Positions 5-25,929 of a stretch of DNA of 64,000 bases are shown here, one piece after another. Origin of the DNA: Neoechinorhynchus agilis. Lineage: Eukaryota > Animalia > Acanthocephala. The DNA lies in NCBI GenBank assembly GCA_051530055.1, contig CM121342.1, forward strand, positions 8,091,389 through 8,155,388. Direction: 5' to 3'. A model generated the notes under the pieces. It was not told the origin of the DNA. It ran no database searches and was given only the letters and a program-made list of their open reading frames with translations. Within the stretch, counting starts at the first letter, position 1, and each line of letters starts with the position of its first letter. The translations under genes and the position numbers were made by a program.

Positions 5-3000
5 TTGTTGGCTATAATGAGAGAGGTTGGTAAGAACACCACACCGGATGGCACCATTTGTACGGATACGTTCAAAGTGATCTACATTGCACCAATGCGT
101 TCTCTTGTACAAGAGATGGTTGGTAATTTCAGTCGTCGATTGGCGTGCTATGGTCTTAAAGTTTCTGAACTGACAGGAGATCATCAACTCACAAAGCAGG
201 AGATTGACGCGACTCAGGTGATCGTGTGTACGCCCGAAAAATGGGATATTGTTACTCGCAAAGGAGGTGATAGAGTCTACACTCAAATCGTTCGACTTTT
301 AATTATCGACGAAATTCATTTGCTGCATGATGATCGCGGACCGGTGTTGGAGGCGATTGTCGCGCGGACCTTAAGGAATATTGAAAGCAATCAAATGGAT
401 GCGCGTTTCATTGGACTTAGTGCTACACTTCCCAATGTCGAAGATATTGCTCGGTTTTTGCGAGTTAATCCCGATTCAGGACTGTTTTCGTTCGATAACT
501 CGTATAGACCTGTGCCGCTCGAACAACAATATATTGGAATCACAGAGAAGAAAGCTGTTAAAAGGTATCAGTTGATGAACGATCTCACCTACGAAAAGGT
601 CATTGAACTCAGTGGTTCGACTAAGCAACAAGTACTGATTTTCGTTCATTCGAGGAAAGAAACTACTAGAACGGCTAAATGGATTCGGGACAAGTGTATG
701 TCAGAAAACACAATCGGATCATTTCTACGAGATGGATCTGCCTCCATGGAAATTCTTAAATCCGAAGCTGAGCAAACTTCTAATTTAGATCTTAAAGATT
801 TATTGCCTTATGGTTTTGGAATACATAATGCTGGTCTCAGTCGCGTAAAACCCATCGTGCTCCTTTAAGGGTTTAAATTGCGAACAATTATTGAATTGTT
901 TTAAGCCTTCTTTTTTATAGAAGCTCGATTAGTCTACTTTAAAAACGCTTAAAGGGTAAATCTCTATTTTTAAGTAATGCGAATTCCGATTCAGCCAATC
1001 TTAGTAGAGTCTCAAAAATGGGCGATGGAATTGGCACTAAAATTCAGTCGATTACGGAGATTTCCCAAAAAGGGATATTGTTAATTTTCCAATATCCACA
1101 AATTCCCTAACATTCAAATTTCAAAAAACACGAAGGCAAATGTCATTGAAAGCAAGTTACTCTTCAGTAGGTCTATTTTTTACAAGAAAAAAGTTTCTTG
1201 CTTTATATTTTTATAGAGGCGAAAGTTGATTTTTTTTTCAAAAAAAAATTAAAAACGCTTTGTCGCGCTTCTGTTTCTAATGTTAAAAGGAGCACGGATT
1301 GGGCAATAGATCGAACACTGGTTGAGGACTTATTTGCGGATCGACACATTAACGTCCTTGTATCTACAGCAACCCTTGCTTGGGGTGTTAACTTACCCGC
1401 TCATGCGGTTATCATTAAAGGAACTCAAGTGTATAGCCCCGAACGTGGTCGATGGGTGGAACTCGGTGCATTGGATGTGATGCAGATGTTGGGTCGAGCC
1501 GGTCGCCCCCAATTCGACCGTCGTGGAGTAGGTGTCCTTTTGACCACTTACACTCAACTCCAATACTATTTAAGTCTCATGAACCAACAATTGCCGATTG
1601 AAAGTCAATTGATTGCTCGTTTAGTGGATAATCTAAACGCAGAGTTGGTTCTTGGCACTATTCACAATTCTGACGATGCCGTTCAGTGGCTTAAATATAC
1701 GTATCTCTATATTCGAATGCTGCGCAATCCAGTACTGTATGGAATTGAATTGGACGAAATAGATTCGGATCCGTATCTGGTGAACCGTAGAAAAGACCTC
1801 ATACACACTGCTTGTCTTCATCTAAGCAAATCAGGTCTTCTAAAATACGATCCACGAAACGATCATCTTGATCCAAGTGCTCTGGGACGTATAAGTAGTC
1901 ATTACTATGTAACCGCAGATACAATGCAGGTATACAATCAGCTGCTAAGATCAACTGTATCTGAGATCGAACTTCTTAGGATATTCGCCTTATCGTCAGA
2001 GTTCCGAAATATTCGAGTTAGAGAAGAAGAAAAACTCGAGTTGGCGAAGTTGATCGAAAGGGTTCCATTTCCGGTAAAGGAAGCAGCTGAGGAACCAAGT
2101 GCTAAGGTGAACGTTCTCCTTCAAGCTCATATAAGTCAACTTCATCTCGATGGATTTTCTCTTGCTTCAGACATGATATACGTCACTCAAAGTGCCTCAA
2201 GGCTTGTTCGAGCTTTATTTGAGATTGTTTTGAGCCGGGAATGGGCTCAACTAGCTGAACGGTGTCTAAATCTTGCAAAAATGATCGATCGACGAATGTG
2301 GCAATCAATGTGTCCACTGAGGCAGTTCAAAAAAATTCCGGAGGAAATTGTTAGGAAATTAGAGAGGAAGATTATACCTTGGGAACGCTTTTACGATATG
2401 GGTCCACATGAACTTGGTGAACTTATCCGAGCGCCAAAACTAGGAAAATCTCTGTATCGATACATTCACGAGATTCCACGTCTTGAGTGCAGTATTCATG
2501 TACTTCCTGTAACACGATCCATGCTTCAAATTGAACTCAGTGTCCGTGCTGATTTTGAGTGGGACGAAAAAGTTCACGGACGTGGAGCAGAATCATTTTG
2601 GGTTTTTGTCGAAGACGTCGACTCTGAACGACTCCTGCATTACGAATATTTTCTATTAAAAGCGAAATACACAAATGAAGAACATCTCATCAAGTTTTAC
2701 GTCAGTGTATATGAACCCGTTCCTCCTCAGTATTTCGTAAAGATAATAAGCGATCGATGGTTGACCGGTCAGCAGGATACAACGGTTGCGATATCATTTC
2801 GCCATCTCATTCTGCCTGAGAAATTCACCCCATGTACCGACCTTCTGGACCTTCGTCCACTTCCAAAGAGCGCATTAGGATGTAAGTGGTTAGAGGAAAG
2901 CTACGATTGGGCATATTTTAATCCCATTCAAACACAAGTTTTCAATACAGTCTACAATACCGACGAAAATGTGTTTGTGGGTGCTCCGGTCGGTTGCGGA

Positions 3001-5451
3001 AAGACCGTTTTGGCGGAAATTGCCATTTATCGTGCTCTGAGCTCTAAAGGAGGAAGATGTGCGTACGTTCACTCTAGACCAGAAATCGTTGCCGCTCGAT
3101 TTGAAGAATTTAAAGAAAGGTTCAAAAACCTTGGGGTCCATGTTGCTAAACTCACTGGTCACTCACAGACGGATTTGAAAGTGATTGCAACTTCTGGATT
3201 GATTGTGAGCACAGCAAATCATTGGGACAGTGTGAGTAAAAGATGGAAACAACGAAAAAGTATTCAAACGTTAAAACTGTTTGTTATTGACGATCTTCAT
3301 TTGGTTGGATTTTCCGATGGTCCTGTAATTGAAGCTATTTGTTCTCGGATGAGATACATTAGTTCTCAAGTTGCCGATAATCAAATGCGAATTCTGGCCT
3401 TAAGTGCCTCCACTGCAAATTTAAGAGACATTTCATCGTGGTTGGCATGCTCAAAGGGCGCATTTAACTTTCATCCAAGCGTTCGGCCTCAACGACTAAA
3501 CATTCGAATTCAAGCGTTCAATCAGTCTCACACGCCTACACGTCTACTCACAATGTCCCGACACGTGTATACGGCCGCTGTTCAATGCGGCCGTGAATCC
3601 GTGATCGTTTTTGTTAGCAGTCGAAGACAAACAAAACTCACTTGTGTTGACATGTTGGCCTATTCCGTTGCCGATGGACAAAATCTTCAATTTTTATCCG
3701 TGGAGAAATCGGAGGATCTTCTTGCTTCAATCGTTGACAAATTGAATGATGAGTATCTCGGAGAATGTTTAAAACATGGAATCGGATACGTTCACGAAGG
3801 AAGCAGTCATACGGATGAACTCATTGTGTTTGACCTTTTCACTTCGGCTATTATAAAAGTACTCGTAGTCACTCAATCGATCTGTTGGCGACTAAATTCA
3901 CTTCATAGTTACATGGTGATCTTGAGTGACACCTCGTTCTATAATGGCCAATCGCATTCCTACGAGGACTATCCAATGTGTGACATCCTCGAAATGTGCG
4001 GTCGAGCAACCCACGACGCTCTCGTACTCACAGAACGGTCAAAAGCTGAATACCTCCAGAAATTCCTATACGATCCATTACCAATAGAATCACATTTGAC
4101 GTCAGCGGCAGCGACTCAAGGCATTCACGATCATTTTAACGCAGAAATCGTTGCTCATACAATTGAGAGTAAACAGGACGCTGTCGATTACCTTACATGG
4201 ACTCTCATGTACCGAAGGATGACTCAAAATCCAAATTATTACAATTTAGCTGGTCTTACTCATCGACACCTTAGTGATCACTTGTCGCAACTCGTCGAAA
4301 GTGTCCTCAGTGACCTTGCCGAATGCAAATGCATCCAAGTAGACGAATTCACGTGCTCTCCATTGAACCTTGCAATGATATGTTCATATTATAGCGTCTC
4401 ATATCGCACAATTGAACTTTTATCGCGTACCTTAAGTCCGAAAACTAAAAGCAGTCGAACGTTGCTTGAACTTGTTTCCAACGCTGCCGAATTCGACGAT
4501 CGCCTTCCAGTACGCCATCGTGAAGATGTCATTCTTAAACAACTCACTCAAAGGCTACCTGAGACTTACACACCACCTAAAAATACCAATGATCCGATCC
4601 ATCTTAAAGCTCATGCACTCATATACGGATATTTGGCACGACTACAACTACCGGCAGAACTTGAACGAGACGCCGATTTCGTTATTGCACTTGGCGCAAA
4701 ACTTCTTCATGCTTCCGTTGATGTTCTTAGTTCGAGTGGATACTTGACATCAGCTTTAGTCGCCATGGAAACCGTACAGATGATCGTACAAGCAGTTTGG
4801 CCGGGATCAGGCGATTCAGGAGTCCTGAGACAAATTCCTCATTTCAATGAGGAAATAGTGGACAAATGTAGAGGAAAAGGCGTGTTTAGTGTATTTGATC
4901 TCATGGAAATGGACGACGACGAAAGGTTAAAGCTTTTACAAGAAAGTCTTAGACCTCGGCAGGTGTCAGACGTGGCTCGTTTTTGTAATGCGTATCCGAA
5001 CGTGGATTTCGGTATCATTGTCAAGTCCGTGAGTTCACAGGGAGATGTTGTCAGTGAGCTAAAGGTAGAAAGCGATGAAGACGAAGACGGAGTTGTAGAA
5101 TGTATGGACGATGGGAGTGTTTGCGTGGAAGCGACACTCGAGCGGGAGCAAGATGACGAAGGTGAGCAGTTGGTGGTTGCTCCTTTCTTCCCAAATGAAC
5201 TAAAGGATGAAGGATGGTGGCTTATTGTGGGACATCCACATTCTAATCGTCTTCTAGCCATCAGAAGAGTTTCCATGGGAAACAAAAGTCAAGTCAGAGT
5301 TCAATTGGATGTAGCTAACCCGTTGACACATGAAGATGGGTCACAAAATGAAACGGCGCAACTTAAAGTGTATCTCATGTCCGATTCTTATTTGGGATGC
5401 GATCAGGAACACAAATTTAAAGTAACCAAAAGAAACCTCGCTAAAATTTGA
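5..5451 (+). CDS. SNRNP200: U5 snRNP 200-kDa helicase BRR2, 5'-partial; exons <5-847 and 1309-5451
   Basis: Tandem Ski2-like helicase cassettes and Sec63 domains ([43 protein letters not shown], second cassette [10 protein letters not shown]). The join 847/1309 gives [15 protein letters not shown], the conserved BRR2 text. Confidence 0.97.
848..1308 (+). other. Non-GT-AG intervening sequence in BRR2 (461 nt)
   Basis: cgc gTA|aaacccatcgtgctcctttaa...ttaaaaggagcacggattgggcaaTA|gat cga. TA at 846-847 and 1307-1308; inverted arms 851-868 and 1283-1303. Confidence 0.85.
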
Positions 5452-5692: not shown

Positions 5693-5866
5693 CCTTTCGT
5701 TCATATTTACGAAAACGCCACGTTCTATGACATCGGCTGCGATTTGTACTTTCGGCCTGATACATTCGAAAAAAGTTCGTAGTTTGCTGATTTATTCTCT
5801 CTTACAAGTTTAAGGTGGCTTTTAAATGAGAAGCGCTTAAAGTATGCTAAAAAATCTTTTTAGAAA

Positions 5867-6252
5867 ATGAAAGATAGCAAAGTGCATTTTCTTCCCTGTC
5901 ACATCGACTACAATGGTTCTACTGAAGTGGACGAGTTATTTTCGAGTAAAATAAAAGCTGGGGATGAAACTGAAGACGGTATCATGGAAGTGAATGAAGT
6001 CGGAGCGCCTAAGAGTTTCGCCTCTTCTAAAATCTTAGAAGCATTGACTATAACACATTCCGTGGGCGTCCGTTGGTTGGACGGCAATTGGCGTTACCCG
6101 AAGGTTGGACCGGTGTATTTATAGAGGAAGATTCAATGGAAGTAATATCCAAATTCAGCGAGTTCACTTATTGGAAATTAGACGAGAAAACAACGAACAA
6201 GGACCACTTCGTCAAGATTATTGAGTTTTTGAACAAACAAAACCAAAGCTGA
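5867..6252 (+). CDS. RNASEH2C: Ribonuclease H2 subunit C; exons 5867-5992 and 6055-6252
   Basis: VHFLPCHIDYNG at the N-terminus. A second frame reads TFRGRPLVGRQLALPEGWTGV...FSEFTYWKLD, matching the RNase H2C pattern (LPC..DG / SFRGR.L.G...LP.G / F...TYW). Confidence 0.88.
5993..6054 (+). other. Non-GT-AG 62-nt intron (AA...AC) in RNASEH2C
   Basis: gaa gtg|aatgaagtc...gactataac|aca ttc cgt gives GIMEV-TFRGR. The only nearby AGs need a phase-2 donor that would delete ~20 N-terminal residues. Confidence 0.7.
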
Positions 6253-6921: not shown

Positions 6922-9900
6922 TTAGACGTGTCTGGACATGCTACGGCGATCTCCATTGCTCAACACGGACAATTCTCTATCAGTGGGTCTCGTGATATAA
7001 TTAAACCTGCTAGCAGCTCGATACTTGCTGATCATGGCTTCAGCAGCTTCTAATCGTTGCTCAGCTCTTAGAAGGTCATCAGCCATGACTTTATATCTCG
7101 CCAGACTATGTGCAGCTTCTTGTTCGGCGCTATCAGCCTGTTTTCTGTAAACCTTCATCTTTTGCTGAAGATTCTCATTCAGCTCTTTGAGTTTCTCATT
7201 TTGATTTTCGATCACATCGGCCTGTGTATTTGGACGCTAAGCTTATAAACTTTAAAAAAAGATTACCTGCGTTAGAACTTCTCTCATTTTTCGCTCCATA
7301 CGCCCAGTCGCACGATTCGCATCGTCCACTTGATGGTTCAACAATTGAATGTTATTATCTCTCTCAAGTAAACGGTCTTCAAGGTTCTGGATGGTCGCTT
7401 TAAAATTCCTAAAAGCCGTGCTCTCCGCCATTTCAGCCCTATTCTCCGCTTCTCCCAATTCTCTCCTCATTATACTCATGTCGGCGTCGAGTTCCTTCAA
7501 ATGCTTTTGCTCGAGATTAAGCTTTTCGTTCAGGGAATTGTTTTCAGAAGAAAGTTTCGTGCACCGTTCTTCTAAGACGTGCAATTCGGACAGTGTACCT
7601 TCGTGGTCCACCTGAAGTCGTGCCAACGCCCCATCCGAATGAGCCTTCTGATTTTCCAATATCCGTAAATGGGACACGAGTTCATTCCGAGCGACTGTGA
7701 CTTTGTTTAATTCTAGTTGAAGATTATCAATCGCCTTTTCGTACAATAAGGCGTTTTCCTTTAACCGATCTACTTCCCCAATTAACGCTCTGTTCCGCTT
7801 GGATGCCAAAGCTTCTAAGTCACGAGTTTTGTCATGTTCACGCCGTTCATCGTCCAACTGGTTTCGTAGATCCGATACTGTGCCATGAAGAGCATCCGCT
7901 TGGAGTTTCAAATCAGAAACAAGCTGCTGTTCTAATTCGAGCTCGTGGCGAATAGTGTCACATGCTGCTAAAGCGTTCTCTTTTTGAGTTAAAGCTTCAC
8001 GTTTCGCCATAACCTCGGCTTCCACGTTCGCTTGCATCATTTCCAGCATCCTTTGTGAATTTTTCTTTGTTGATTCAATATCTTCCTGGAGATCTCTTAA
8101 GGCCATTTCGTATTCGTTTTTCATGTTGTCCAAATCGTTTAAAGAACCCTTCAAACGAATTTCATATTCGTCTTTTTCCATCATACAATCGTCGATCTTC
8201 AACTTTAATTCGCCCTTCTCCTTCTCCAGTCGCTGTTTCATTTTCTCAAATTCAAAAACGCTTGTTGCGTTTTCTTCTACTTGCTCAATCAAATTCCGAA
8301 CTTCATCAGACAAATTCCGATTCTCGCGCCTTAAAGATTCAATCTGGTCCTGGGCTTCCATATACTGATCCTGTTTTTTCTGAGCTTCGGAACTCATGTA
8401 TTTGGCGTTGTTTTGAGCACCTGCCAACTCCAAAGACACACTTTCACACTTTTGTTTCCATTCCTCAATTAATCGATCGAATCTCTTTTGTTTCCTTTCC
8501 AAATTTCCAATGGTTGTATTCGCTTTATCCACAGTGCCAATCAATTCTTCAACCTCTTGCTATAAATGCGCGCACGCACACTTTTAAGGGCTTCAAAAAT
8601 TCTCCAAATACCTGCAGCTTCTCTTTTGACCGTTGTAAAAGAACACTCTTATTCGCTGATTGCTCAATCTGGTCTTCAGCCTCGACCAAACGAGTTTCGT
8701 ACTTGCTTCTAGTTTCCTCCATTTCACGCATACGCTCAAATCGTTCATTCTCGTATTTTTTCCTTAATTGTTCGATCTAATTAACAAGAGATACAAACAT
8801 GAGAAGGTTTTTTCTTGAGCAAAAACTAACCGCATTATTTGCGCATACCAACTCCTTCTCGAATTCTCCGCGATTCTCCAATTCAATTTCCAACTGAGTC
8901 TTCACGGATTCCAACTCAACCACAGCATTTCGTAACTCGGCGGTTAAAGCAACCTTAGCCCGGTCCTCTTCGTTCAACTGATGTCTTGCGTTCTCCAAAT
9001 GATCCTGAAGAAGTTGTTTCGCCTAAAATTTGTGAGATTATATTAAACAATTAGCATTTAGACGTGTGGTTTAATCATAATCCTTCGGATAAAACGTATT
9101 GAAATATTTCGAAAGAGGAACAACTAAAATATCTTTCGAAATATCAGTGAATTCAAAATATTTTATATCCGGTGATCATGATTCGAGAAGGACTTTCGAT
9201 GATTTTGGATTTGTAATGACCTTCAACAACGAACTGATTTGATTACGATACTCTTCAAGGTCCGCATTAACTAAACGCAACTCTCCGTCGATCTTCTTCT
9301 TAGCTGCAGTCTGCTCGTCGAACCTTCGAGTGAGTGTCTCGATTTGCGCATTCGATTCCTCCAGATTCGCTTCCATTTGAGCGTTCAACGCACTCAGCTT
9401 CTCGCGCTCTTTCTCCATTTGTTCAATAACACCTTCAGCATGAACTAATTTATAACCAAGTTCATGAACCTCCTTGTCCAATCTCGCTTTATCGCTGTAT
9501 ATCCCGTCTATTTGCTTTCCCATCTCTTCAACGGCTGCCTGATGTTTCTGTTTCAATTGAGTGATCGTCGTTTCGTGAATCTCCGATAACTCCCGCATAT
9601 CAAATCGTAACTTTTCTAGTTCGCCTTCTCGTTTCCGAGTTATGTCACCGTGTGTAGCGTTCATTCGCTGACTCTCTTGTACAAAGCTGCTTTGCTTTTT
9701 AAATATAATTTTTGCCATTAATTTTGATGTGTCTTCGACGGGGAAAAGATACTTCTTTTTCTTAGTTTTGTTAACCCGAGGATTTAAATTCACTGATTTA
9801 TTTCAAGTCGGATTATTCTTACATTTTCCCGTGGATTCTCATTGTTGAAGTGTTTAATCCGAACATCGGAAATAAATCAGTGAATTTGGTGGCAAAACTA

Positions 9901-11178
9901 AGAAAAAGAAAACAAATTTTAATCTTCAACTTTTTATTCTTTTTCTATTTCAATTAACTCAAATGACATTGTAAAATTAAGTCTGAAGCGGACGCAAGAA
10001 TTTTAGATTTACTCAAATTTTAATAATCTTCCTGAAATTTAAATCATTTTTACACTTTTCAGTTAGGTTCAAATCGAGAGAGAAATCCAATTGTTTATTA
10101 GTAAGACACAATTTTAGAATTACTTATTGCGATATTTTTCTATTAATTTTATTAATCACTGGCCCACTATAGAGGTGAATGTAATCTTACAGGAAGAAAT
10201 AGACTGCTGAAACTATGCGGAAATTTTTCTTGTTTGCTTATTTCACAGATCAGTCGATCGTTATTTCCTGAAATTTAAATGATAAAATTGTTACCAATAC
10301 GCGAAACAAATTCGAATTCCCGAGAAGCAATGCTGCTTGTTTAAATTTTCATCCAATTCTCTTATTTCAATCTCATTTTCAGTATTCTTGCGTTCAATCT
10401 ACACAAATCATAACAATCTTTTCGGTCAAAAACAGTAAAAAACTCACCTTTAATCTCAATTCTTTTTCCGTATCTAAGCGTTGCTCGAGATTTTCATATT
10501 CAGACTAAACCCGAGAAGAACTCGAGATTTGAGCTAAAATGTTTCGCTCACCTGCAAATCAGAATATCGTCTGTGCATATTTGAAAGTCCGATGGATTTT
10601 TCTTCTACAATTTCTTTAAGGCTGTTTATATTTTCGTCTTTATGTTTAATTTTGTTCTCAAGTTCAACGCGTCGTTTCTCAAAGTCTTCTCGTTCACTTT
10701 CAATTGAACGTATTTCAAGTTCAAACTTTCGGTTGTTTTTAGTCGCAATACTCAACTGTCTTTTCTCATTTAAAAGATTGTCCTCTAAGTCGTTGATTGT
10801 CTGTTCAAGTTTAATCCTTTGTTGAACAAGCATGGAGTTCTTGTTTTGTTCGTTTACAAGGTCACTTCTAAGACTCGTGCACTCGGTTTCAATAGTTCGG
10901 CGCTCGGATTTAAGTCGTTGGACGGAATCAGAATTATCGGTCATCTCCCGTTTTACATCACTCAGAAGCTGATCACGTTGATTGAGTTGTCTCTGCAATG
11001 CCCTAATCTTCTCTTCCAACTCTTCAACCGTTCCATTTAGAGTTTCAATCTCAGAATAAAGTTCTGACTGCTGCCGTCGTTCCCCTTGAATTGAACGGTC
11101 ATCTTCGATTGTGCTCGTGTGCTCATCGCTGTATTCCTCTTCCATATCGTGTGCCAAACGAACAGTGTTTTCCTCCAT
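6922..11178 (-). CDS. Myosin heavy chain rod-like coiled-coil protein without a motor domain (~1050 aa, 8 exons)
   Basis: Heptad sequence colinear with the myosin II S2/LMM tail (TRKREGELEKLRFD, LERKQKRFDRLIEEWKQK, LQQKMKVYRKQADSAE). Six GT-AG introns plus one non-canonical insert; presumed start MEENTV at 11178. Confidence 0.8.
9680..10341 (-). other. Non-GT-AG intervening sequence in the myosin-rod gene (662 nt)
   Basis: Minus strand aat tTA|aacaagcagcattgct...agcaaagcagctttgTA|caa gag. Arms at 10326-10338 and 9684-9696 (11/13). Confidence 0.8.
9786..9887. mobile_element. ~100-bp MITE-like foldback inside the myosin non-canonical insert
   Basis: Perfect 19-bp inverted repeat aaattcactgatttatttc / gaaataaatcagtgaattt, plus inner tcggatta / taatccga. 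Confidence 0.65.
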
Positions 11179-11355
11179 CTTTAATACCTTTGCTCCCACG
11201 TTTACGCGCAGACACTTATGCCTCTGACTTTCCGCCGCTAATATCTTCTCTTCCCTCCCCACCCGCGAAACCCATTGCCGAAGAATATATCTTTTTCCAT
11301 CACCCGCTCGCACAAACACGTACCTCACACTGAAAAATATTGTCTCTCTCTCTTC

Positions 11356-13028
11356 TTAGTTTGGAACTATCAGTTGCCAATCGGTCGGCATATTTCCTTC
11401 AAGAACACCTAAAGCACATCCAAATCCCTGGATCACGCTCATCGGATACCCAATGTCGCATAAGTACGATTGGGAGCATACTTTACCCAATCGAAAAACA
11501 ATCACACCTGATTTATCGTGCAATTGGAAATTCTTGGCTGATGAATACAACACTCGATTCCCATACCTAAGAATAAACGCGTTGTTGTCCCATATAGGCG
11601 CAACCGTTTCCAACAATAATGTCCGAGGTGGAACTGACTTGATTTTGTCCCTTAATTCCACTTTATCCGTAAACATCAACTTATATTCACCTCTTGATCT
11701 TAACTCGGATTTGAACCGGCGCCCATTCTGGTCAATGGCCGGTATTAGTACTCGCGTTGACCAAAATCGACCATACATCAGCGAATTCTCGTCGTGAGTT
11801 ATACTGGCCTGCTGAACCTCGGTCCCTGAAGGTTCCATCACGTAAAGACCGGTCAGTCGCCACGTCATGTTCGGCTTAAGCCAACCGATTAATCGTTATT
11901 GAACACTTTCAGACAATTAGGACCTACGGAAAAAATTTGATTTTTCGAAAGGATTTCTCTTAACCGGTGAAGGTGTAATGCGCCACACGACTAATTGTTT
12001 CGAATCAGTTGGCTGTGTGAACTCTTCACCGGTTAAAAAATGCTTTCGAAAATTCGAATTTCCCCCAATCCCGTAGGCTTTTAGTGCATTTCATCGCTAC
12101 TTAATCGAATTTAGACAAATTTTCAAATATAAACTGGTTTTTAGAGTTTTTATAAGAGTTCACACAGCCCACCGATTCGAAACAATTAGCCGTATGGCGC
12201 ATTATCACTTCACCGGTTAAGAGAAATCCTTTCGAAAAATCGAAAATTTATTGTTTTTAAATAGAATAAATTCTGTGATTTCGAATCGGTTGACTGTGTG
12301 AACGCTTATAAAAACTCTAAAAAACCCAACAAGCCACACGTATGAATTTTCCGTTGAAGGGTTAAATTTTTGATCTAAATTCGATCTCAAAACTAATCGT
12401 TACGGACATTGATTTAAATAGCAATGATTTTTTAATTTTATTTAAGAATTTGCGTATATCAAACATTCGGCTTACTATAAGCGAGTTATAAAATGAAATT
12501 GTTGCCATTTCATACTAATGTTCAATAATTTCTGCTTACATATTTCGTATCAAACTCCATTAGTGAATCGTGTGAGTTCTCCGATATACAAATCTTAATC
12601 GCGCCCGAAACTGCATAACGTGTAGCCAACAACAAAGGATCCTTTTTATCCAAATCATCGCTTCGATAGAGGTAATAATGGGAGCCTAAACCCGATTTAG
12701 ATCGATGAATCACAAAGTTCACACAGTTTCCCTTGTTATTAAGAGGTTCGGTTACATCGAGATATCGATTGCTTAATTCCTTCTTTACAGCGAACGGATT
12801 ATTTGTTGAGAATAAAGGTCGACTTCGTCCATCAACGTTCGATTTGAACCTTAGTTTCTTCAATGCCTCGTCTAAGCTCGATTTAATTATACTCTTTTTT
12901 CTGCCAACATTGCTTTTGTGTTGTTCTTGTTCAAGAAACTGAGGTAGCGATATTCTTCGTGAATTGAGTGACTGTTGCTTGAACGCATCCTTAAAAATGA
13001 TTTCGCTATCGCTTTCGTTTTTTCTCAT
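11356..13028 (-). CDS. Tubby-domain (TULP-like) protein, 2 coding exons
   Basis: HYYLYRSDD..PLLLATR, P.WDNNAFILRYGNRV...SAKNFQL, FRLGKV..SYLCDIGYPMSVIQGFGCAL match the tubby C-terminal domain. Confidence 0.85.
11890..12536 (-). other. Non-canonical intervening sequence in the tubby-like gene (~647-650 nt)
   Basis: tat gTA agcagaaattattgaaca...tgttcaataacgatTA atc ggt tgg. Perfect 10-bp inverted repeat; no in-frame AG between the stop and IGWLKPN. Confidence 0.75.
11936..12245. mobile_element. Foldback/MITE with ~90-bp inverted arms inside the tubby insert
   Basis: 11941-12026 is nearly the reverse complement of 12154-12239; a partial third arm lies at ~12279-12328. Confidence 0.75.
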
Positions 13029-14174
13029 CGTTTTTTATGAATGTAACCCCAACTGAACAAAAACCTAAGATGAATGCAGAATCCATGAACACATTCATCG
13101 TTGACTCAGTCCTTTGAACTCGGTCGTGATTTTTACCAGAAGTGAATCAAAGTTTTCTTTTTTAAGGAGACTTACGTTGCTCAAAAGTAATCTCGGTGAA
13201 ATTCAAGCGACGGATAAGCCTTTTTCTCTGTTAAGCAAAATAGTATTCAATCAAACTCAGTCCGAATGAGACGTTCTTAAATTGTAAAATTTTGAACTGC
13301 AAATTCACACACTGAAAAAATTAGAAATAGTTTTAAAGTTATCCAATGAGCTTCAAAAAGTTTTGTTTGATAGATATTCTGATTGATTGTCTTAGCTTGC
13401 AAAGTATCAAAAACCAAGCAGAAACGCAGGGCTATATTATTCGTAAATCGAATAAAAAACATGTTCAATAACGTGTCCTTGTTCGTATTTGAATCCATGA
13501 ATATCGTCGTGTTCAATGGTTCTTTTTTATGTCCATCAATTTTCAGTTACAATTGAGGTTGAGGACGGCGAATGGTTATGTTTATATCTTCAAACAATGA
13601 ATTAGTGAAATTCTGAAAATCTAGTGCATTTTAGTGTTAAAAATTGTTCTGACAAATATTCATTTGTACGGTAAATCAACCAGCAATGCCAAAATCTATG
13701 AAATATCTTGTTCTTTTCGATTATCGGAACAGAAATAGTAGGCTAAAAATTATAATCTTTCTAATAGTTGTCTAAGAACTTTCAGCACATTATCAAATAT
13801 TTAGGTAAAAGACAATTATGAAGAGTGCAACGGTTTCGATAAATAAAAACGTTTTATTGCATCCATAAATCATTTTTAGGGGTTTGATTCTGATTTATTA
13901 TGTTTTATAATTTAATATTCGCTTTTTAAGAATACAGAAAAGTACATTTGAGTGATCTAAGATTATGGCACAAAAATTCGCCTTTTTAAGAAACCATAAA
14001 AAGAATTGGCCTGCAAAAAGATTACGGCATCTAAGATCATTTTTAAGGAACTGAGAAGAGTGGACACTTTTAAAATAAGTCAAAAATCCATTCAACAACG
14101 CGAATGCTTTAAAATTGTGAGAATTTCATTCGGTTTTTCCTGTCGACTTAATCTACAAAAATTCGTCTAAAAAT

Positions 14175-17100
14175 TTGATGGCACTTTTATTTTTGCAAAA
14201 TGATAAAAATAAATCAATGTTAAAAAACGTCCGCCGCGAGGAGGACCACAGACGCCTCAACCAAGCGGTTACACGCATGTGCGCGCAATCGATCGTTGTA
14301 AAAAAAGTCTACTCCAAGGAGAAGCCTACTGACCCTCCAGATGAAGGGGGTGAAATTCACGAACCACAGGTTAGTGAATTGTGTGATAGTGGGACGGGGA
14401 GTGATGCCTCCGCCGTTATTGTTTTTCCCCCGGTATCCCCACAGCTTTTTGCATCTAATACTCATTCACAAAAAAATTGAAAATTTCATATTAAAATTTA
14501 ATAAAGAAAAGATGGGTAACAAAAGTAAATTTAATCTTATAAACTACTACGTAAAACACACATTAAACGAAGCTCAACGTAAAAATATGTTTTTTCCATT
14601 AAAAAACCTTCGAAAGCAAATTTTCAGTAATGATTGTTTTCTCAGACTACAAAGATGCTTTCATCAAGACATTAAATGAGCTAAATATTCCTTTTGAGGA
14701 CTTGTCGAGGAGGGTCACTTTCCTTATGATGAATCCCCCACAAGACCTTCCCGCTGAGGAGCAAAAAATTATTGAGGTTGAGAACAAAATCAAACTTATT
14801 ACCGAAAAAACTCATCAGCCTATGCTTTTCTTTGCTCTGCCCCCTCGTCGAAATAGCCGACTCGTTATGTGGTGGGTATAAAAGATGTATTTTTTCGTTC
14901 TGGGTGACATTCACTAACTATAAAGACACCATCCAGGACTATAACTTAACCATTTGTCAGAGATGTGCCAGCTGGGCACTTCATCGCTGTGGGGGAGAAC
15001 ATCTAAAGGCGAATTGCCCAAATCTCAAAACCCCATGCTATCCCAATTGCGGACTAAGTCACCAAACATATTCAAGATCACGTAGGGCGGCGACATCTTT
15101 TTTTGGAAAGCTGTCTGAAAACAGCCAGACAACCAAGAAAAGAGCTTAAAAGTGTCACAGTTACATTTGCACATGAACCCCGATCCAACGGAATGCAGCA
15201 ATAAACTTTAACAAATAGAAATTCACCCCAAAATATTTCGACCGAACATTGTTTTTTTAAACCTCTAATGGAGAGTGGTTCTCTTAAACCAGACTTGAAA
15301 ACCCCAATAAACCTCCCGATTCATTTCTTAACGAAACAAATGGAGATAAATTGATGCCAGTTTTATTCCAAGATTTGGAATCACTAAAAAAACCTAATTT
15401 TCATACTGTTGAATGCTTTTAGGGTCAACGGCATTTGCAAAGATATACCCGCCAATTTACTAGACCCGGGTATTCCTCCGCAAGTTAACAAGCGTCATCC
15501 ATCCTCCGTAATTATGATTTTATTAAACCTAAGAAAGGACGAGCTAATATTTGATGAATTTTAGCCTTGCGACATACAATACATCAAGAGCCTTTTACTT
15601 ACCCAATCATATATTAGGAAAAATTTGAGAGGTTCTGCAAGACCTATTGTTTTTTCAAGAGACGGCCGTTGCATCTCATACAGTCTGATTCTTATAATTG
15701 TTTTAAACTGGACCAGTCACCACCAGCTAAAAAAATTAAATATAGGTTTTTCGGGAGGTTTACAATGTTTCATAAAAACGAAATGGAAGCCAAAATTACT
15801 TGAGCAGGAAAAAAACGAAATTTTTTCTTTCCAAGTTGTATCTATAATAAATCCTTTTTATTTCCCAGCATCAGGTACACATCTGATTATTGTAAATTTC
15901 TATGTTACTCCCAGGAAGGTGTCTCACTTCCTAAAATTAAAATCTCATAGAATATCGATTTGGTACCCGGACTTGATATGCGGAGATTTCAACTCCAATT
16001 ATCTTTCAATCTTTTTTCAAGGACTACTCAAGCTGTATCACTAAATTCCCATAATTCCACAATTATTCAAAGCAGTCTCATTCTTTTCTAGACGGATTCT
16101 TAATAAAAAAGTCTATTCCGATTAATATGTACCCCACTGCTCAACCTCAAGTTCAGCAACGTATGGGACATGATTTTATACTATTTGGATATAAAGCCCT
16201 TGACTTAAAGGACCGAATTGTTATCAACCCCAACTCAATTTTACATTTTAACGTCAAGTTGACAATGGGATTGAAGGCTAAGAGAAAAATATTACTCAAA
16301 GATCTAAACGATATGATATTATCAGCAGCCGACTCTTGTTTAATTAAAAAGGGTTTCATTCACAGAACATTTGCCTCCAAGGAAGCCAATATAATATACA
16401 AGAGGGCTATTATAGCCAATTTAAATAATGAGGGAACTGAATACAAAATTATGATGTCTCAATTTTACTCAACAATTCACAAAGAGGAAATGGAGAGGGA
16501 TAAAAATGTACTATTTTTATGCAAAACCTTTTCTAAACCTTTTTGGAATGTTATTTTAAAAAATAAAATAGTTAATTGGAAAACTAAGCCAGCGTCTTGG
16601 ATTGGATCCGCCTCTTATCCAGAAGTTATCAAATTAATTTTGACTGCACACACTTTCTCTACTTTTACTAATCAACCAATCATCATTTTGCAATACAAAA
16701 ACTTTGCATGGAACATAAAATTAGAGGAACTTTTAAACGCATGGAAATCAAACCCGTCAAGAGCGAATAATTCATTCGCTGTTTCCCCTTCCATCTTTTC
16801 TTGTGTCTCCAAAGATAACAAATTATTATTTTTACAATGTTTTAACGATAAAATCAACACTAAGGATCTATTATCTATCAATAAAGCAAGGAAAATATTT
16901 ATCCCAAAAGCGAAATGTAGGAAAATTTCAGATCCCTCACACATTCGAGTTGTATTGATCCAGAATCTTTTAATATCGTGCTTGGAAACATATAATTAAC
17001 TTTAAAGTCATAAACAATCTCTTGAAAAAAACGGGTTCATTCCTGGTAGAGGAGTACACACTCTTTTATCATCCCTTCAATCCTACAATGAAAAGTACAC
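14175..17100 (+). mobile_element. Degenerate APE-type LINE (ORF1 with Cys/His knuckles, endonuclease, start of RT)
   Basis: CQRC...HRCGGEHLKANC...CGLSH in ORF1; IIVNFY...LICGDFN endonuclease motifs; RT-start-like KCRKISDPSHIRVV and GFIPGRG. Many stops and frameshifts. Confidence 0.75.
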
Positions 17101-17329
17101 TTACGTTAAATGAGTAATTGCGCTCATCTCAAAAGTAAATTAGCGCGATGGCAGAGCTCAGAAGGGGTATTGGGTAGCCTGATCAGCTTTAATCCCAGCT
17201 CCAATGTGCTCTAAGGAACCAATATGGCAAATCACGAAACCTCAATCAATTAGATCATTACTAATAATATGTGTATGCGCGTGCCTGATTGTAAGGATAA
17301 TAATAATAACACAAACGCCCTTCGAAAAC

Positions 17330-19260
17330 GTTCCCGCAATAGTCACCCGAGGAACACCGGGAAGATTGCATTCCGATAGTTCAAACCTGCCACAACAACG
17401 TCCGCCACGCCGGCTGTTTCAATCGCTGGCGAGGGGGTGCCCAGTCTCTAATGCAAATCGGTCAAATGCAATGTTTGTCTTCGTGACTTCAAACCGAATC
17501 TCAGTGGTCTCGTCCGCTCCCACGATAAACATGGGTCGCATTGCCCTGGATCCAGAAAACCGGCAACTCAGCCTGTCTCTCCGTCTTCATCCAATCCATC
17601 CAATCCAACCGAACTCACAACTCCCGCGTGACTGGACGAATCCTGCGAGGCGCCAGGCCCTCAGTAGCCTCCAAATTAGCATGCCTGATCGAGCGCATCC
17701 TACGTGATTCAACTGTACCATCTGACTGGTTCAACCTCATCGCGTTTCCGAAAGCTATCTTACGTGTTCCCACACAAACATCTGAAGCCAACGAGAATCC
17801 ATCGCTTAGCCAAAATATTCGCAACAGGTCCGACGCTTTCGAGTCCTTTGAACAAGTCGAGTATCTTGGATGGCAGAGCCATCGCCGTAATTTTCCTCAC
17901 GACCCGGACTCTCAACTCCGCGCGAAATGCTCCGAGAAGCTGGAGGACGGCGATCGTGTGCCGTTCGACTTGTAAGCGGAACGGACCGCCTACTCGCGCC
18001 GAACAAGGACATCCTCGACTCCTTAAAATTGAAGCATCCTCCACGCAGACGGAGTTGCTTCAAGCCAAATTATGATCCGTTGTTCACAGAGTCTGACCGC
18101 GATCCCCTCATACCCACTACAGTCTCCACCGTCACTTACGCTCTGATATCCTTTCCGCCATCGTCAGCTGGAGGGCATGATGGTTTAAGCCCTCGACACA
18201 TACGGGATTTGACCTGCTTCTCTTCTGGAGCTCAAGGTACACGATTGCTGAAGGCAATCACCGAGCTCACACGCGTAATCGTCCGCGGTTCCGTACCTCC
18301 TCCAGTCGCAAGTCTACTCTGCGGTGCCAAGCTGATCGCTTTCACAAAAAAGGTGGAGGGGTTCGTCCGATTGCCGTTGGTTGTACCTTCCGTCGACTGG
18401 CATCCAAAGTCGCGTGTCAGTTCGCCACCGATCGATTGATCGATCAACTCTGGCCGGTTCAATTAGGAGTCGGAGTTCCTGCTGGAGCCGAGGCGGCCGT
18501 ACACTCAGCACGAGGGTATAGTCGAAATGGTATCAATAAGGGAAGGGCTATGGTCAAGCTTGACATGGAGAACGCGTTCAATTCAATATGCCGCACCGAG
18601 ATGACGGAGGTTGTCCACCAGCACTTACCAGAAATCTACCAATATGTGTCCTTGTGCTACGACCAGTCCATCATGCTGCTGTTTGGCGAGTCCCAGGTCG
18701 AATCAGCAGAGGCTGTTCAACAGGGTGATCCCCTAGGTCCTCTGCTGTTCGCATTGACGATCAATCATCTTGCCCACAGCTCTTTCTTCAGAGTTATCGA
18801 TCTGGTACCTTGACGACTGTTGCATCGGAGGGGAGATCGACCAGCTCATTCGCGACATCAAAAACATCTCCGAAATGGGTGCCGATATCGGACTATTCCT
18901 GAGAACGGACAAATGCGAAATCATTTCGGACGACCAAGAGGATGCATCGAGACTGCTCACCGTACTGCCCGGAGCAAAGACAACTGCAACCGACTCAGCT
19001 GACATTCTCGGGTCTCCAATCGGTAACCTGTCTAACCTGGGAAACGTTTCTTTCAAAAGCCATCGATCAATTGCGGCTCATTGCCTCCAGGCTCTTGCAC
19101 ATCGCGCGACACGACGCTCTGTTCATACCAGGACGATGTCTGTCGCTTCCGAAGATTGCGTACCTTCTGAGGACTTCTCCATGCTTCAGGTCAGTGCTCA
19201 CCAGGGATTTCGACAACTGCGTTCGATCAACCTTGGCACGAACAAGCACATATTTAAAAA
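17330..19260 (+). mobile_element. CRE-clade-like non-LTR retrotransposon, frameshifted and 3'-truncated
   Basis: N-terminal C..H..C finger-like text; RT motifs SAGGHDGLSPRHIRDL, QLGVGVPAGAEAAVH, KLDMENAFNSI, VQQGDPLGPLLF, WYLDD. Confidence 0.8.
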
Positions 19261-19272
19261 CTTACAAGCAAA

Positions 19273-19574
19273 CTGATGATGAACCCGACGAGGTTCGAAA
19301 AGTCTTTAATAAATAATCATTTACCGGGTGTAGACCTTTAAACAATAATTCTAATCACATTCTCCGGTACCTCACATATCGACAATCATGACGACAGTTG
19401 CAGAATTGGACGAAAAAGAGGAATTTGTGAACGAAAAGCAAATGTAATGATTATTTGCATGTTAAGCAAGGTCGATATGTGAGGAGGTACCGGGGATATG
19501 TGATTGGAAATGTTTTTGAAAGGTCTACATCCGGTAAATAATTTTTTCGCTTAAAAGTGCTTCGAACCTCGTCG
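19273..19574 (+). mobile_element. Foldback repeat with ~100-bp inverted arms, starting with a hammerhead-like core
   Basis: 19286-19384 inverts ~19470-19574; CTGATGA-T-GAACC-cgacga-GGTTC-GAAA at 19273-19300. A related copy lies at 41537-41700. Confidence 0.7.
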
Positions 19575-20700: not shown

Positions 20701-21135
20701 TTCATTTGGTAGGTCTGGGGAGGATGTGGGGTTGCGGGAGAGAGGGGATCATTTCGAAGCATTCAGAGAAATTCAGGTGGAGTTTGTGATTGGTACAGAA
20801 ACTGAGATGGAGTTTGTGATTGGTGCTCAGTGTAAGGTAATCGAACCCCGGCCACTTGCATGACAGGCAGATTTGTCATTAGCTTTTATCCTTAGTCTTA
20901 ATCCATTTGGAACCACTCCAAAACCATCAAATGTCTCCATGTCAAGACAATTTTTGAGGTTATTTACGTAATTGTGCAGGAAATTCTGGGAACCTGAACA
21001 AAAACTCAGTTTTGACAAAAGAAAGGGAATGAAACATTCCTTAAACTCGTGCTAAATTGCCAGTCTTGTGTGTGCTTTTTAGTCTTTAAATTTGGATTGC
21101 CGGTTGAATTGAATACTTTGTTAATTTCATTTCAG

Positions 21136-24009
21136 ATGTCCTTCGATTGGTTCGACAATGACACTGAAGACTCCATCGCACCTTTGAACGCGGACGAACT
21201 CGGATATCTCGAAATGCTGCGATCCAAAGAGCGATTTTACATGAGCGAGGAAATCGTTGATGATTTGGATAAGACGCGTCTGTCGATATTAACGTACCAT
21301 TCAAAAAAGGAACAAAATGAAACAGGCATCGAATTGCTAAATAAACTTTCACAAAAGCTGTCAAAAGCCGCACCAATCGACCAATTTCTCTCAACACGAG
21401 CAGAAAATTTTCAATTGCTTGAAAGGGACCATGCGGCGATGATTTCGTCCTTGGAGGTATTTTTTCATCCCTGCCAAATATTATCCAAATCTCAGGACCG
21501 TTTGACCGATGAAATTGACTGTATTCAAAGACGGCTTCGGTACTTTTCAATTACACGATCACTCGTTCGTAAGCTTGAATCTAACATGATTCTCACCAGT
21601 GTCGATATTATTGCAAACCAAATTCTACCACAGGCAAAGGAATGCCTTGGTTTTATGAGAGCACATCGTGAATACAAAGAGGCTGAAATTTACGAGAACA
21701 CTCTCCGAGACACAGTGATTCCAAAATGTCTTTCTATTCTTAAAGAAAGCTCCATTGAGATTCTGCGGCTGGCTTCCAATGGCCTTTCCAATAGTAAAGA
21801 TAAAGTTAAAGAAAACCCATCGTACGAAGAAGTATTCAATCGAGTATATGGTGAGTTTCGCATGAACACTTGTCTTAAGCTGCAACAAATAATCGATGCC
21901 ATCAGCAGAATCGAAGATGGCGGTGGTTTAGCTTTTGAAGAGACGGAAAGGAAGTTGGCGAAAATGGTCATTGAAGATTGTGTTATGGCTTATGTTAATT
22001 GCCGAAAACAAATGATCCTTGATCCAGTTAAAAAGCAAATCGAAAGTCATCACGAGTCAACTGGAAAAATGAAGAAACATTCTTTTGTTTATTATCTCCG
22101 TCAATCTCTCGATTTGATCTTCGCCGTTTGTGAAAATGAAAACCAATTAATCGGTGAAGTATTCCGATCCATGTCTGGGTCTTCAGCAGCACTATTTTCG
22201 ATCAATGAACATTTATTCAATCACATTTGTGATGCGCTCGTTAAAATATTTTTGGAATGACGACTCCGGGTTTTCATTTTATAGAAAAGGTTTCTTAAAA
22301 TTCTCGTTACAAGAAGTTTCACGTGCCTTAAGGTTTAGTAAAAACTCGTCTAAACTAGTTCTGGAAGCAAATTATTTCGTTCTTTTTCTAAATATTCGAA
22401 AAATCTAAGTTGTGTGCGAACTCTGAAGCCATAGAACCACTTAATTTGCACGAAATATTTAAGCTACGATAAGAATTTTAAGATTTCGTCAAGTGGAAAA
22501 ATTGCCTCAATTTTAAGAGGAATGTCTAATATATTTAAAAATCACTTCCGATCGCATTTTAAGATTTAATTACTTATTTTACAGTCTCAATAAGTCGTCT
22601 TTCTCCGCTTAATTCGTCCACTCATAGTCAAAACCAAATGTATCGAGACACTAGCCGACATTGTCAATGCACTTCAACGCGATCCATTAACTGAGGATTC
22701 CACTGCGCCCTCATCCACTTACCGGTATCCTTCATCCATCCGGACGACTCTGACGCAGTTAATACAAGACTCACAAGAACGTCTTGTATATAGAACCGGA
22801 GTGTACACCAAAAATGATATTTTGCAATACGAGCCGAACTCAGCTGATCTCATGTACCCAGAACGTCTCCAATTGATGCAATCAATCGCCAATGAACAAA
22901 GCGGCAAAAATAATTCAAATTCTAAATTTGATCTTCACGGAATGTGGTATCCCACTCTTCGTCGTACTTTACTTCACATGTCCAAGCTTTATTATTGCAT
23001 CGATGATAACAGCGTATTTCAGGCTCTGTCACAAGAAATAACTGTCGATTGTTTAAATTGCGTACCGGAGAGCAAAGCACTGGGTAATTTATACATTTTT
23101 TGCCTTTAAATATACAATATTTGATTTTTAAAATAATCATTGAGACGGGATGGTTTCTTAAAACTTAGAAACAATTCGATATATTTCAATGGAATGAAAT
23201 ACGTTTTATCCGATGGATTTATCAATCAAAAATAATTCATTTTTAAAACAAAATTTCTTATCCGTTAAAAGTGAATATGTCAGTTTTATGATTTAAAAGG
23301 CTCTTTTTTTAAGAATTAATCTTTAGATAAACTCATTACTTCGTTGTTTTCACCGTTAACGAAATGCTCTTTGAAACGCAAATTAACATCCCTTCAAATG
23401 GCGGCGGTCAAAATCAGTGAAAGATCTTCACAATCCGATGGATTATTGTTTCTACTTAAACATCTCCTCATTCTAAGAGAACAAATAATCCCCTTTAATG
23501 TCCGATATGCACTTGAGGATACTCGCATTAATTTCGGTAAATTAAAGGACGCATTCGGCATTCTACTGCAGCAAACCAAAGAAGATTCGGCTTCTGACTC
23601 GCATGGGACCAACAGTGTTTTCCTCGAATTTTTAACAAAAGGGCAAGACGTTATTGAAGAATCACTGATTGATTCTCGATCAGAAGTTGATAAAGCCATT
23701 CAGACGACTTGTAAAAAGCTCATTGAAATCTGGAAAGTTGACTGTCGATGCGCAGATGATATTTCCTCCAATGAAAATGCATTTAGTCAAGCGTTTTATG
23801 CCGTCAAGGAATTTGTTCCATTGCTTAAGTCTACTCTTAACCTATATCTTGCCGATGAACGACTTGAACGAGTTCTATTTCGTCCGATCGGAAATATGAT
23901 AATTGATAAATTCGAAAAAGCTACCTTTGAAATGGATGGAAATGCTGATGGATCCTATTTAAAGCAAATCAGACAAATTGTTGATTCGCCTGAGAATACT
24001 GTCGAGTAA
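21136..24009 (+). CDS. COG3: Conserved oligomeric Golgi complex subunit 3; exons 21136-22248, 22612-23055 and 23386-24009
   Basis: RPLIV...IETLADI, LIQDSQERLVYR, GMWYPTLRRTLLHMSKLYYCID..VFQALSQE, DGLLFLLKHLLILREQI.PF. Confidence 0.92.
22249..22611 (+). other. Non-GT-AG intervening sequence 1 in COG3 (363 nt)
   Basis: aaa aTA|tttttggaatgacgact...agtcgtctttctccgctTA|att cgt cca. Arms at 22254-22265 and 22593-22604 (10/12); in-frame stops inside. Confidence 0.78.
23056..23385 (+). other. Non-GT-AG intervening sequence 2 in COG3 (330 nt)
   Basis: tgt TTA|Aattgcgtaccggagagca...tgctctttgaaacgcaaaTTA|Aca tcc. TTAA repeat; arms at 23058-23074 and 23365-23381 (13/17). Confidence 0.82.
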
Positions 24010-25482: not shown

Positions 25483-25929
25483 ATGGCTCATAGAAGACCG
25501 GACGTTCTTTATGACAGCGATACTGATGAGTACTACATTCCCAGTGAAATGCGTCCAGATGGGCGACGGACCCGATCGATGCGAGTACGGCGGGATTATG
25601 TGCCGGATATTTATCAGAAGCCATATATAATACCACAAAGAAGAGTTGAAGAGCGTAAGAACAAATGCTCTCCGCGGTTCGATCTGGACGAAAAATGCCG
25701 CCAGACCAATAAAGGCGATTCGAACCAAAGGTCGGTAGAGAAAGAAGGTTCCAATTCTAGCACAGTGGCACGATCAATCTCTTCACATAAAGCCCCATGT
25801 GTAGACGAAGTCCCAACGGTTAGAGAGTATCTTAGAAAAACACGAGGGTCCATTGAAGAATCGAAAGTGGACCCGAAACTTGTTGATTTAATTGAACAAA
25901 TCAAGAATATAAAGCTTAGAGACGATTAG
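25483..25929 (+). CDS. PYM1: PYM homolog (partner of Y14-Mago)
   Basis: YIPSEMRPDGRRTRSMRVRRDYVP matches the PYM N-terminal motif YIP.TQRPDG..RK.RRVK.GYVP. The ATG is directly preceded by ttttaag. Confidence 0.8.
   Translation: MAHRRPDVLYDSDTDEYYIPSEMRPDGRRTRSMRVRRDYVPDIYQKPYIIPQRRVEERKNKCSPRFDLDEKCRQTNKGDSNQRSVEKEGSNSSTVARSISSHKAPCVDEVPTVREYLRKTRGSIEESKVDPKLVDLIEQIKNIKLRDD

Follow-up and report, generated by a model that had tools for sequence, protein, structure and literature searches.

Can an essential core spliceosomal helicase be made from a gene in which a conserved exon is split by an insert that canonical splicing cannot remove cleanly? The question is raised by a 64,000 nt stretch of the Neoechinorhynchus agilis genome (GCA_051530055.1, contig CM121342.1, positions 8,091,389–8,155,388, forward strand; hereafter the window), which begins within the BRR2 (SNRNP200) gene. 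A short non-coding element interrupts BRR2, and an element of the same build interrupts a glycogen-debranching-enzyme gene further along the window. That both are transposon insertions into coding exons we regard as firm; both are known here from the genomic sequence of one assembly alone. We tentatively favour the reading that such an insert is excised precisely from the pre-mRNA at non-canonical ends, in the manner of the introns of Fritillaria that derive from MITEs (miniature transposable elements with inverted repeats). "Insert" is the correct label for these sequences, and "intron" would be a hypothetical name for them.

A TA-duplicating element in an exon of BRR2

The features around the BRR2 insert are as follows (a caret marks a junction here and below):

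2–847, + strand: upstream part of the BRR2 (SNRNP200) coding sequence, known from translation, orthologue alignment and alignment with human BRR2
846–847, + strand: left copy of the TA target-site duplication, which is the TA of the Val codon GTA; deletion from TA to TA restores the frame
848–1308, + strand: the insert, 461 nt, made up of a 459 nt non-coding element (848–1306) and the right TA copy (1307–1308)
851–868, + strand: 5' arm of the terminal helix, CCCATCGTGCTCCTTTAA, with a perfect 11 nt core at 856–866
1262–1281, + strand: pyrimidine-rich stretch ending in CTAAT (1277–1281), about 28 nt before the 3' junction, as read from the sequence
1283–1303, + strand: 3' arm of the terminal helix, TTAAAAGGAGCACGGATTGGG, with a perfect 11 nt core at 1286–1296
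1309–5451, + strand: BRR2 coding sequence downstream of the insert, from GAT (1309–1311; DRTLVEDLF...) to the stop codon at 5449–5451
845–1309, + strand: best-looking canonical splice pair, CGC^GTAAAA ... AATAG^A, which removes 465 nt

The upstream part encodes the N-terminal helicase cassette and is open in frame 2 from position 2 to its last codon, Val (GTA, 845–847). The downstream part continues in a different frame for about 1380 uninterrupted codons, and apart from the insert there is no interruption across 5.4 kb. Joining 847 to 1309, which deletes 461 nt, gives the protein ...HNAGLSRV^DRTLVEDLF... (at the DNA level ...AGTCGCGTA^GATCGAAC..., that is, ...CGCGTA^GATCGA...). Alignment with BRR2 orthologues bears this TA-to-TA join out: the joined protein is gapless across the junction against nine orthologues, and 220 residues align without a gap over the junction to human SNRNP200/BRR2 (491 bits, posterior accuracy 1.00). 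Human SNRNP200 is also the best match among solved structures, ahead of ASCC3 (410 bits). Because of these gapless alignments and the score of SNRNP200 above that of ASCC3, the interrupted gene is BRR2, the name given to it in a first-pass annotation made from the letters of the window. On human SNRNP200, the insertion point falls at about V792/D793. This is within the N-terminal helicase cassette, and we take the site to lie in the RecA2 domain of the catalytically active cassette.

Near the insertion site (827–835 and the alignment), BRR2 departs from its orthologues at near-invariant positions (HHAG to HNAG, HIQV to HINV, AHTV to AHAV and PEKG to PERG). These substitutions could reflect a fast-evolving lineage or relaxed constraint.

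The 11 bp perfect core that the first-pass annotation placed in arms starting 3 nt from each TA is present, as CGTGCTCCTTT at 856–866 and its inverted counterpart at 1286–1296. It sits within longer, imperfect arms that begin 3 nt inside each TA (at +4 and −6, with the core at +9 to +19 and −23 to −13) and form a helix of about 18 bp, 11 of them perfect (about 18/22 with indels). The repeat is subterminal, with the outermost 3 nt (AAA and CAA) mismatched. Perfect end repeats of at least 11 nt, counted up to 35 nt from the ends, occurred in none of 5,000 random window segments of 300–650 nt; the BRR2 inverted repeat is more than chance. In predicted RNA folds, the arms form the closing stem of the minimum-energy and centroid structures alike (z = −2.8). 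The insert is AT-rich, disrupts the BRR2 reading frame and holds no internal open reading frame (ORF) of 60 or more amino acids. It is a MITE-like, TA-duplicating, non-coding and non-autonomous DNA transposon inserted in a GTA^GAT codon pair.

Several other origins were considered for the BRR2 insert and rejected. It matched no Rfam family and no transfer RNA (tRNA) model in ARAGORN, which speaks against derivation from a non-coding RNA, a tRNA or a short interspersed nuclear element. Across the whole window, Rfam returned nothing at the gathering score, and positions 780–1380 gave only chance-level matches to small nucleolar and small RNAs (E ≥ 0.5). A self-splicing group I or group II intron was likewise set aside, as the window holds no Rfam match to a catalytic RNA structure. 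Duplications of the TTAA (piggyBac) type and the 8 bp (hAT) type are both absent from the flanks of the insert.

The TA duplication, the inverted-repeat ends and the exact restoration of the frame are together the plain signature of a recent insertion. The main rival to precise removal is a disabled or redundant gene copy, in which the transposon is never removed and the interrupted gene is either a heterozygous null allele that the assembly happened to capture or a duplicated, polyploid or degenerating copy covered by an intact BRR2 elsewhere. We consider this rival somewhat unlikely. The departures of BRR2 at near-invariant positions, such as HHAG to HNAG, would fit it.

Canonical splicing does not offer a clean way out. 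Owing to the TA duplication, no register that removes the insert exactly can begin with GT and end with AG. Three exact registers (TA..AA, AA..AT and AA..TA) are equivalent through the duplication; the AA..AT register, proposed earlier as the only one to restore the protein, does restore it exactly but shares this property with the other two. GT845 and AG1309 are both made of the TA duplication and the flanking G's of the original GTAG site, and the pair takes 4 nt too many (465 versus 461 nt) and shifts the frame, as the first-pass annotation had noted; it is missing from the 41 frame-preserving GT/GC-AG pairs listed for the insert. All 41 alter the protein, by −33 to +49 residues. The mildest, each ending at AG1309, start at GC843 (−2 residues), GT840 (−3) and GT834 (−5), and further in-frame pairs include GT845–AG1326 (−7) and GT845–AG1218 (+29). 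Features of U12-type introns are also lacking: the 5' end reads (GT)AAAACCCATCG instead of ATATCC or GTATCC, and the last 40 nt hold no TCCTTAAC branch site. Clean GT-AG removal of the BRR2 insert is impossible.

It is quite unlikely, in our estimate, that the ordinary spliceosome uses cryptic sites here (GT840, GT834 or GC843 with AG1309) and yields a BRR2 short by 2–5 residues. In-frame pairs do exist, donor sites in this genome are weakly conserved past the GT, and a plausible CTAAT box (1277–1281) lies about 28 nt upstream of AG1309. By reading, this box resembles the CTAAC, CTAAT and TTAAC boxes of the window's short canonical introns, and it could be a branch site. Against such splicing, the strongest donor, GTAAAA at 845, frameshifts, and the in-frame products lose residues of a helix that no orthologue breaks with a gap and that is largely invariant among all of them. 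The residues altered by the mildest pairs fall in the HxAG(L/M) segment, whose spacing is conserved across Ski2-like helicases. If the BRR2 gene works, removal is therefore probably exact, because imprecise canonical splicing would cut into this helix of conserved spacing.

A second insert, in the glycogen-debranching-enzyme gene

The whole window was scanned for pairs of TA dinucleotides that have an inverted repeat near the ends of the intervening sequence and whose deletion joins two long open frames. Besides the BRR2 insert, this gave one non-trivial match, about 27 kb from it:

26945–33228, − strand: glycogen-debranching-enzyme gene, 1148 bits to the human structure
28131–28764, − strand: debranching-enzyme insert, 634 nt (632 nt element and one TA), in a conserved exon

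On the minus strand, the TA copies of this insert are at 28766–28765 and 28132–28131. An 11 nt perfect inverted repeat, TCTATGGTTCA, is found at 28757–28747 and 28147–28137. It begins 7 nt from one boundary of the insert and stops 6 nt short of the other, which leaves 4 nt ahead of the 3' TA. The distance of the 11 bp core from the ends is variable (3–12 nt). The two elements have no sequence in common. As with the BRR2 insert, the predicted RNA fold of the debranching-enzyme insert is closed by a terminal stem; its two TAs are base-paired with one another in an extended helix. The proposal that the BRR2 insert belongs to a class is thus upheld by a second TA-bounded insert with an 11 bp stem, in a conserved exon of another gene.

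The TA-to-TA join gives ...ILADRVAL^MYPTDES... (DNA ...GGCTTTA^ATGTACCC...). Here an in-frame canonical alternative exists, GT28773..AG28152, and this pair is a further point in favour of cryptic splicing. We scored both junctions against the human structure, the yeast structure and a profile of 120 orthologues (45 displayed):

Human structure: TA-to-TA 240.2 bits; canonical 231.5 bits (8.7 bits less)
Yeast structure: TA-to-TA 169.6 bits; canonical 163.0 bits (6.6 bits less)
Profile of 120 orthologues: TA-to-TA 407.4 bits; canonical 394.2 bits (13.2 bits less)

The loop at the junction has the same length in all 45 displayed orthologues, with the pattern [IL]LxD[KR]-VSR-[LI][YF]P, and the TA-to-TA product fits it. 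The product of GT28773..AG28152 would instead carry four extra residues in this loop of invariant length and lose the conserved V-S-R, which counts against cryptic splicing at this gene as well. Since the orthologue pattern fits the TA product and not the canonical one, the ancestral debranching-enzyme exon was split at this TA by an inverted-repeat element whose sequence is not related to that of the BRR2 element.

The second insert also bears on the other explanations. An assembly artefact, in which foreign sequence was joined into the BRR2 exon, is very improbable: the BRR2 insert is single-copy in the window, as a misjoined piece might be, but a perfect TA duplication, matched repeat ends and exact frame restoration are not products of misassembly, and neither is a second insert of identical anatomy. 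As for the disabling insertion, it would be very unlikely for rare null alleles to arise twice, independently, in exons of conserved genes over a mere 64 kb, which speaks against this rival. Precise excision at TA from the DNA of somatic or expressing cells, by a transposase-derived nuclease and comparable to the TA-bounded eliminated sequences of ciliates, draws some support from this insert; we nonetheless judge it improbable. In its favour are the TA on both sides, the near-end inverted repeats and the exactness that excision requires, together with the pairing of the two TAs in the debranching-enzyme fold and the fact that unrelated elements share only TA and a stem, with no common splice-site dinucleotides. 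On the other side, a whole-animal assembly would mostly show the excised form, and to our knowledge no precise intragenic DNA elimination occurs in animals. Moreover, the host does not look ciliate-like, with BRR2 closest to animal orthologues, a myosin-tail protein and standard stop codons, and the insert ends do not fit the ciliate TAYAGYNR consensus.

Introns, mobile elements and doubtful junctions in the window

We rebuilt the junctions of about 20 introns in four genes (debranching-enzyme, HFM1-like, COG3 and tubby-like), of which about 16 are GT-AG; about 80–90% of the introns checked are canonical and short. Most introns in the regions 26945–33228, 39156–44900 and 21016–24006 are 43–50 nt long, with a CTAAC, CTAAT or TTAAC box near the 3' end. 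The debranching-enzyme gene has at least 11 clean GT-AG junctions, mostly of 43–50 nt introns, with a few introns of 300–335 nt that have GTAAGT or GTATCC donors. COG3 intron 2 is canonical, and so is an intron of about 650 nt in the tubby-like gene that holds ordinary MITEs. The other features of the window, including two junctions for which canonical splicing gives no good solution, are:

5864–6249: RNase H2 subunit C
6925–11355: myosin-tail-like coiled-coil protein
11359–13034: tubby-domain protein
22240–22605, + strand: COG3 intron 1 at its orthologue-favoured junction, a possible third non-canonical insert
25240–25926: putative PYM-like protein, from reading the sequence; no Pfam match
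31786–31748, − strand: 39 nt in-frame piece with a TAA (31759–31757) in the debranching-enzyme gene, between ...IDLDLAT and SHFIPGK
39156–44900: HFM1-like helicase, with canonical introns of 45–50 nt and one of about 614 nt
11961–12218, 12142–12318, 15308–15761, 19322–19535, 24613–24796, 37795–37982 and 46530–46616: ordinary TA-flanked, palindromic MITE-like elements

For COG3 intron 1, orthologues favour the junction ...ICDAL[V/L]^RLIRPLIV, which is given only by the registers GT..TT, TT..TC, TA..CT and AA..TC; the canonical reading GT22229..AG22594 drops a conserved Cys and Leu. The advantage of the non-canonical junction is 4.7 bits only, and the accompanying inverted repeat (10/11 at 22255–22265 and 22593–22603, with a 7 nt perfect core) is not significant. 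We did not accept this intron as a firm third member on these grounds. The 39 nt piece has no counterpart in the human debranching enzyme and is removed by no GT-AG pair; canonical splicing to AG31722 would instead leave out about 30 codons, among them those for the conserved FIPGK. The piece may be a very small intron of non-canonical type; intronisation or a lesion could explain it too. A shared junction motif, CGT(1-3)AAAA, seen at 844 (BRR2), 22239 (COG3 intron 1) and 31763 (minus strand; the 39 nt piece), was discarded: it was chosen post hoc, has 24 occurrences in the window over both strands and is probably due to chance.

These observations bear on the disabling insertion in both directions. 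The several ordinary TA-flanked MITEs show that TA-targeting elements have been active here, and the 39 nt piece with its TAA and the COG3 junction are other possible defects. Apart from such doubtful junctions, the frames of BRR2 (5 kb), the debranching enzyme, HFM1-like and COG3 are free of frameshifts and stops, so that constraint, if lost at all, must have been lost very recently. The inserts also differ from the ordinary MITEs: in the latter, of which those at 11961–12318 sit within the canonical tubby-like-gene intron, the inverted repeats begin directly at the TA and match end to end, while the arms of both exon inserts match over the 11 nt subterminal core only.

Further mobile and repeated sequences lie elsewhere in the window. 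A retroelement at 17183–19313 (+ strand), with a reverse transcriptase that matches Pfam RVT_1, is split over several frames and is probably a dead copy, presumably of the non-LTR (long terminal repeat) type. Retroelement ORFs at 48395–50457 (− strand) have no Pfam match; their motifs suggest to us a reverse transcriptase of the Penelope type with a GIY-YIG-like motif after it. Satellite repeats with a period of 454 nt (27.6 copies, 92% matches) form an array that extends from 51454 to the window end at 64000, and a related 352 nt variant is found at 51114–51805.

The database matches of BRR2, COG3 and the debranching enzyme are about equally distant across many animal phyla, and COG3 is only about 27% identical to animal orthologues. 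The picture fits a compact, intron-remodelled and fast-evolving animal-like genome, one without a close relative in the collections searched.

Possible precise removal and its relation to known systems

We infer that the genome holds a tolerated class of TA-bounded, hairpin-closed exon inserts. Recurrence argues for this: were such insertions rare null alleles, it would be improbable, given the first, to meet another exon insertion in one of some six neighbouring genes. A mechanism of tolerance is suggested by the few defects that the affected genes otherwise show, and by the shared design of the inserts, which combines TA boundaries, an 11 bp subterminal stem and mismatched outermost nucleotides and is unlike that of the nearby MITEs. 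In the mechanism that we favour, the element and one TA would leave the pre-mRNA precisely, at boundaries that are not GT/AG and would be set by the duplicated TA, and the terminal helix may bring the two ends of the insert together for removal. The pyrimidine-rich tract and the CTAAT box before the 3' junction in BRR2 would fit such removal. Because the TA duplication bars an exact GT..AG register, either the spliceosome would have to be less strict about intron ends or some other activity would have to act on the RNA, beside the ordinary GT-AG splicing of 43–50 nt introns. Removal from BRR2 may also be efficient, as had been proposed, to judge from the recurrence and the intact downstream frame of 1380 codons. 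A tRNA-type reaction was rejected, as no bulge-helix-bulge geometry was seen in the folds when these were judged by eye.

The closest parallel comes from Fritillaria borealis and its relatives (Henriet et al. 2019; Soo et al. 2026, PMC13326754; reviewed in PMC11282704). There, MITE-derived introns are bounded by a target-site duplication, and the element and one copy of the duplication are removed by a modified U2 spliceosome (PMC13326754, PMC11282704). A YAY triplet precedes the 5' site and forms the last three bases, and the termini are mostly AG/AC or AG/AT (PMC13326754). GT-AG introns make up only about 5% of the total in F. borealis, where RNA evidence exists (PMC13326754, PMC11282704). 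As in Fritillaria, we see short inverted-repeat transposons with non-GT-AG boundaries in the coding sequence of an animal nuclear genome, and at the DNA level both the BRR2 and the debranching-enzyme insert consist of the element and one copy of the target-site duplication. The positions are lineage-specific in both cases, and here a core spliceosome gene is itself affected. Unlike in Fritillaria, canonical introns dominate among those that we checked. We rate the inserts as a variant of that kind, not as a member of the Fritillaria family.

A number of observations weigh against precise removal from the pre-mRNA. Some concern the comparison with Fritillaria: the duplication is TA and not YAY (GTA precedes the BRR2 insert, and ATA ends it), and the BRR2 termini are AA..TA, AA..AT or TA..AA instead of AG/AC or AG/AT. 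In the same register, the end dinucleotides of the two inserts differ except for the TA (AA..TA versus GG..TA), and the debranching-enzyme insert has no obvious pyrimidine tract. The splicing signals and spliceosome look conventional, because about 16 of about 20 introns are canonical. BLAST of the BRR2 insert against the 64 kb window found no second copy, and a collection of 5.8 billion proteins held no near-identical protein, the best match being 68% identical. The exon flanks had no exact match when metagenome contigs were scanned, and neither an empty site nor a spliced product was recovered in this way. Exact restoration is, moreover, expected of any recent TA-duplicating insertion and hence does not show removal, and the 39 nt TAA piece and the doubtful COG3 junction could instead signal decaying gene copies.

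Removal of transposons from exons at the RNA level has other precedents. In 1996, Rushforth and Anderson reportedly found that Caenorhabditis elegans removes Tc1 insertions from exons by splicing. Removal of Tc1 is imprecise and proceeds via cryptic, near-consensus sites. The inserts resemble Tc1 in being TA-targeting inverted-repeat elements in exons, and the harm of Tc1 is reduced at the RNA level, as that of the inserts would be; unlike there, imprecise in-frame products would here damage a conserved BRR2 helix.

Introner elements of Micromonas, Aureococcus and dinoflagellates (Huff et al. 2016) either bring along or recruit GT/GC and AG, so that canonical splicing removes them exactly (PMC11282704). 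They too are inverted-repeat DNA transposons with a target-site duplication, and they become introns upon insertion, but the TA duplication in N. agilis allows no exact canonical register. In the nonconventional introns of euglenids, positions +4 to +6 pair with −8 to −6 (CAG/CTG) (PMC11282704, PMC12501133). Shared with these are the non-GT/AG borders, the duplication-like junction repeats and a terminal helix, set back from the ends by a few nucleotides, that would draw them together. In contrast to the euglenid arrangement, the helix arms here run from +4 to −6 with the 11 bp core at a variable distance, and euglenids belong to a wholly different lineage.

Internal eliminated sequences of Paramecium are excised at the DNA level in an organism with two kinds of nuclei, have TAYAGYNR ends and are of Tc1/mariner-like ancestry. 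Like these, the inserts have TA at both boundaries with one copy kept, lie inside coding sequence and require exact excision, and they may share the Tc1/mariner-like ancestry. Unlike them, the ends of the BRR2 insert (TAAAACCC and TATTGCCC) and of the debranching-enzyme insert (TAGGTTGT and TACATGTC) show no TAYAGYNR, and two kinds of nuclei are not evident here. More broadly, it is conceivable but unlikely that a second precise excision system exists beside GT-AG splicing for TA-bounded hairpin transposon relics in exons, that of the animal's own spliceosomal helicase among them, acting through hairpin-guided RNA removal or through transposase-like DNA excision at TA.

If the inserts are not removed, the window would record an ordinary outcome, conserved genes inactivated by transposons in a copy that is redundant or in decay. 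If they are removed exactly, as we tentatively favour, GT-AG splicing of most introns would coexist in N. agilis with the excision of elements that the GT-AG rule cannot handle. This would put the genome early or midway on the path that in Fritillaria led to the replacement of nearly all canonical introns, and BRR2, the helicase that activates the spliceosome, would itself depend on the unusual removal. Such inserts would then allow one to follow directly how a transposon that lands in an exon turns harmless and becomes an intron.

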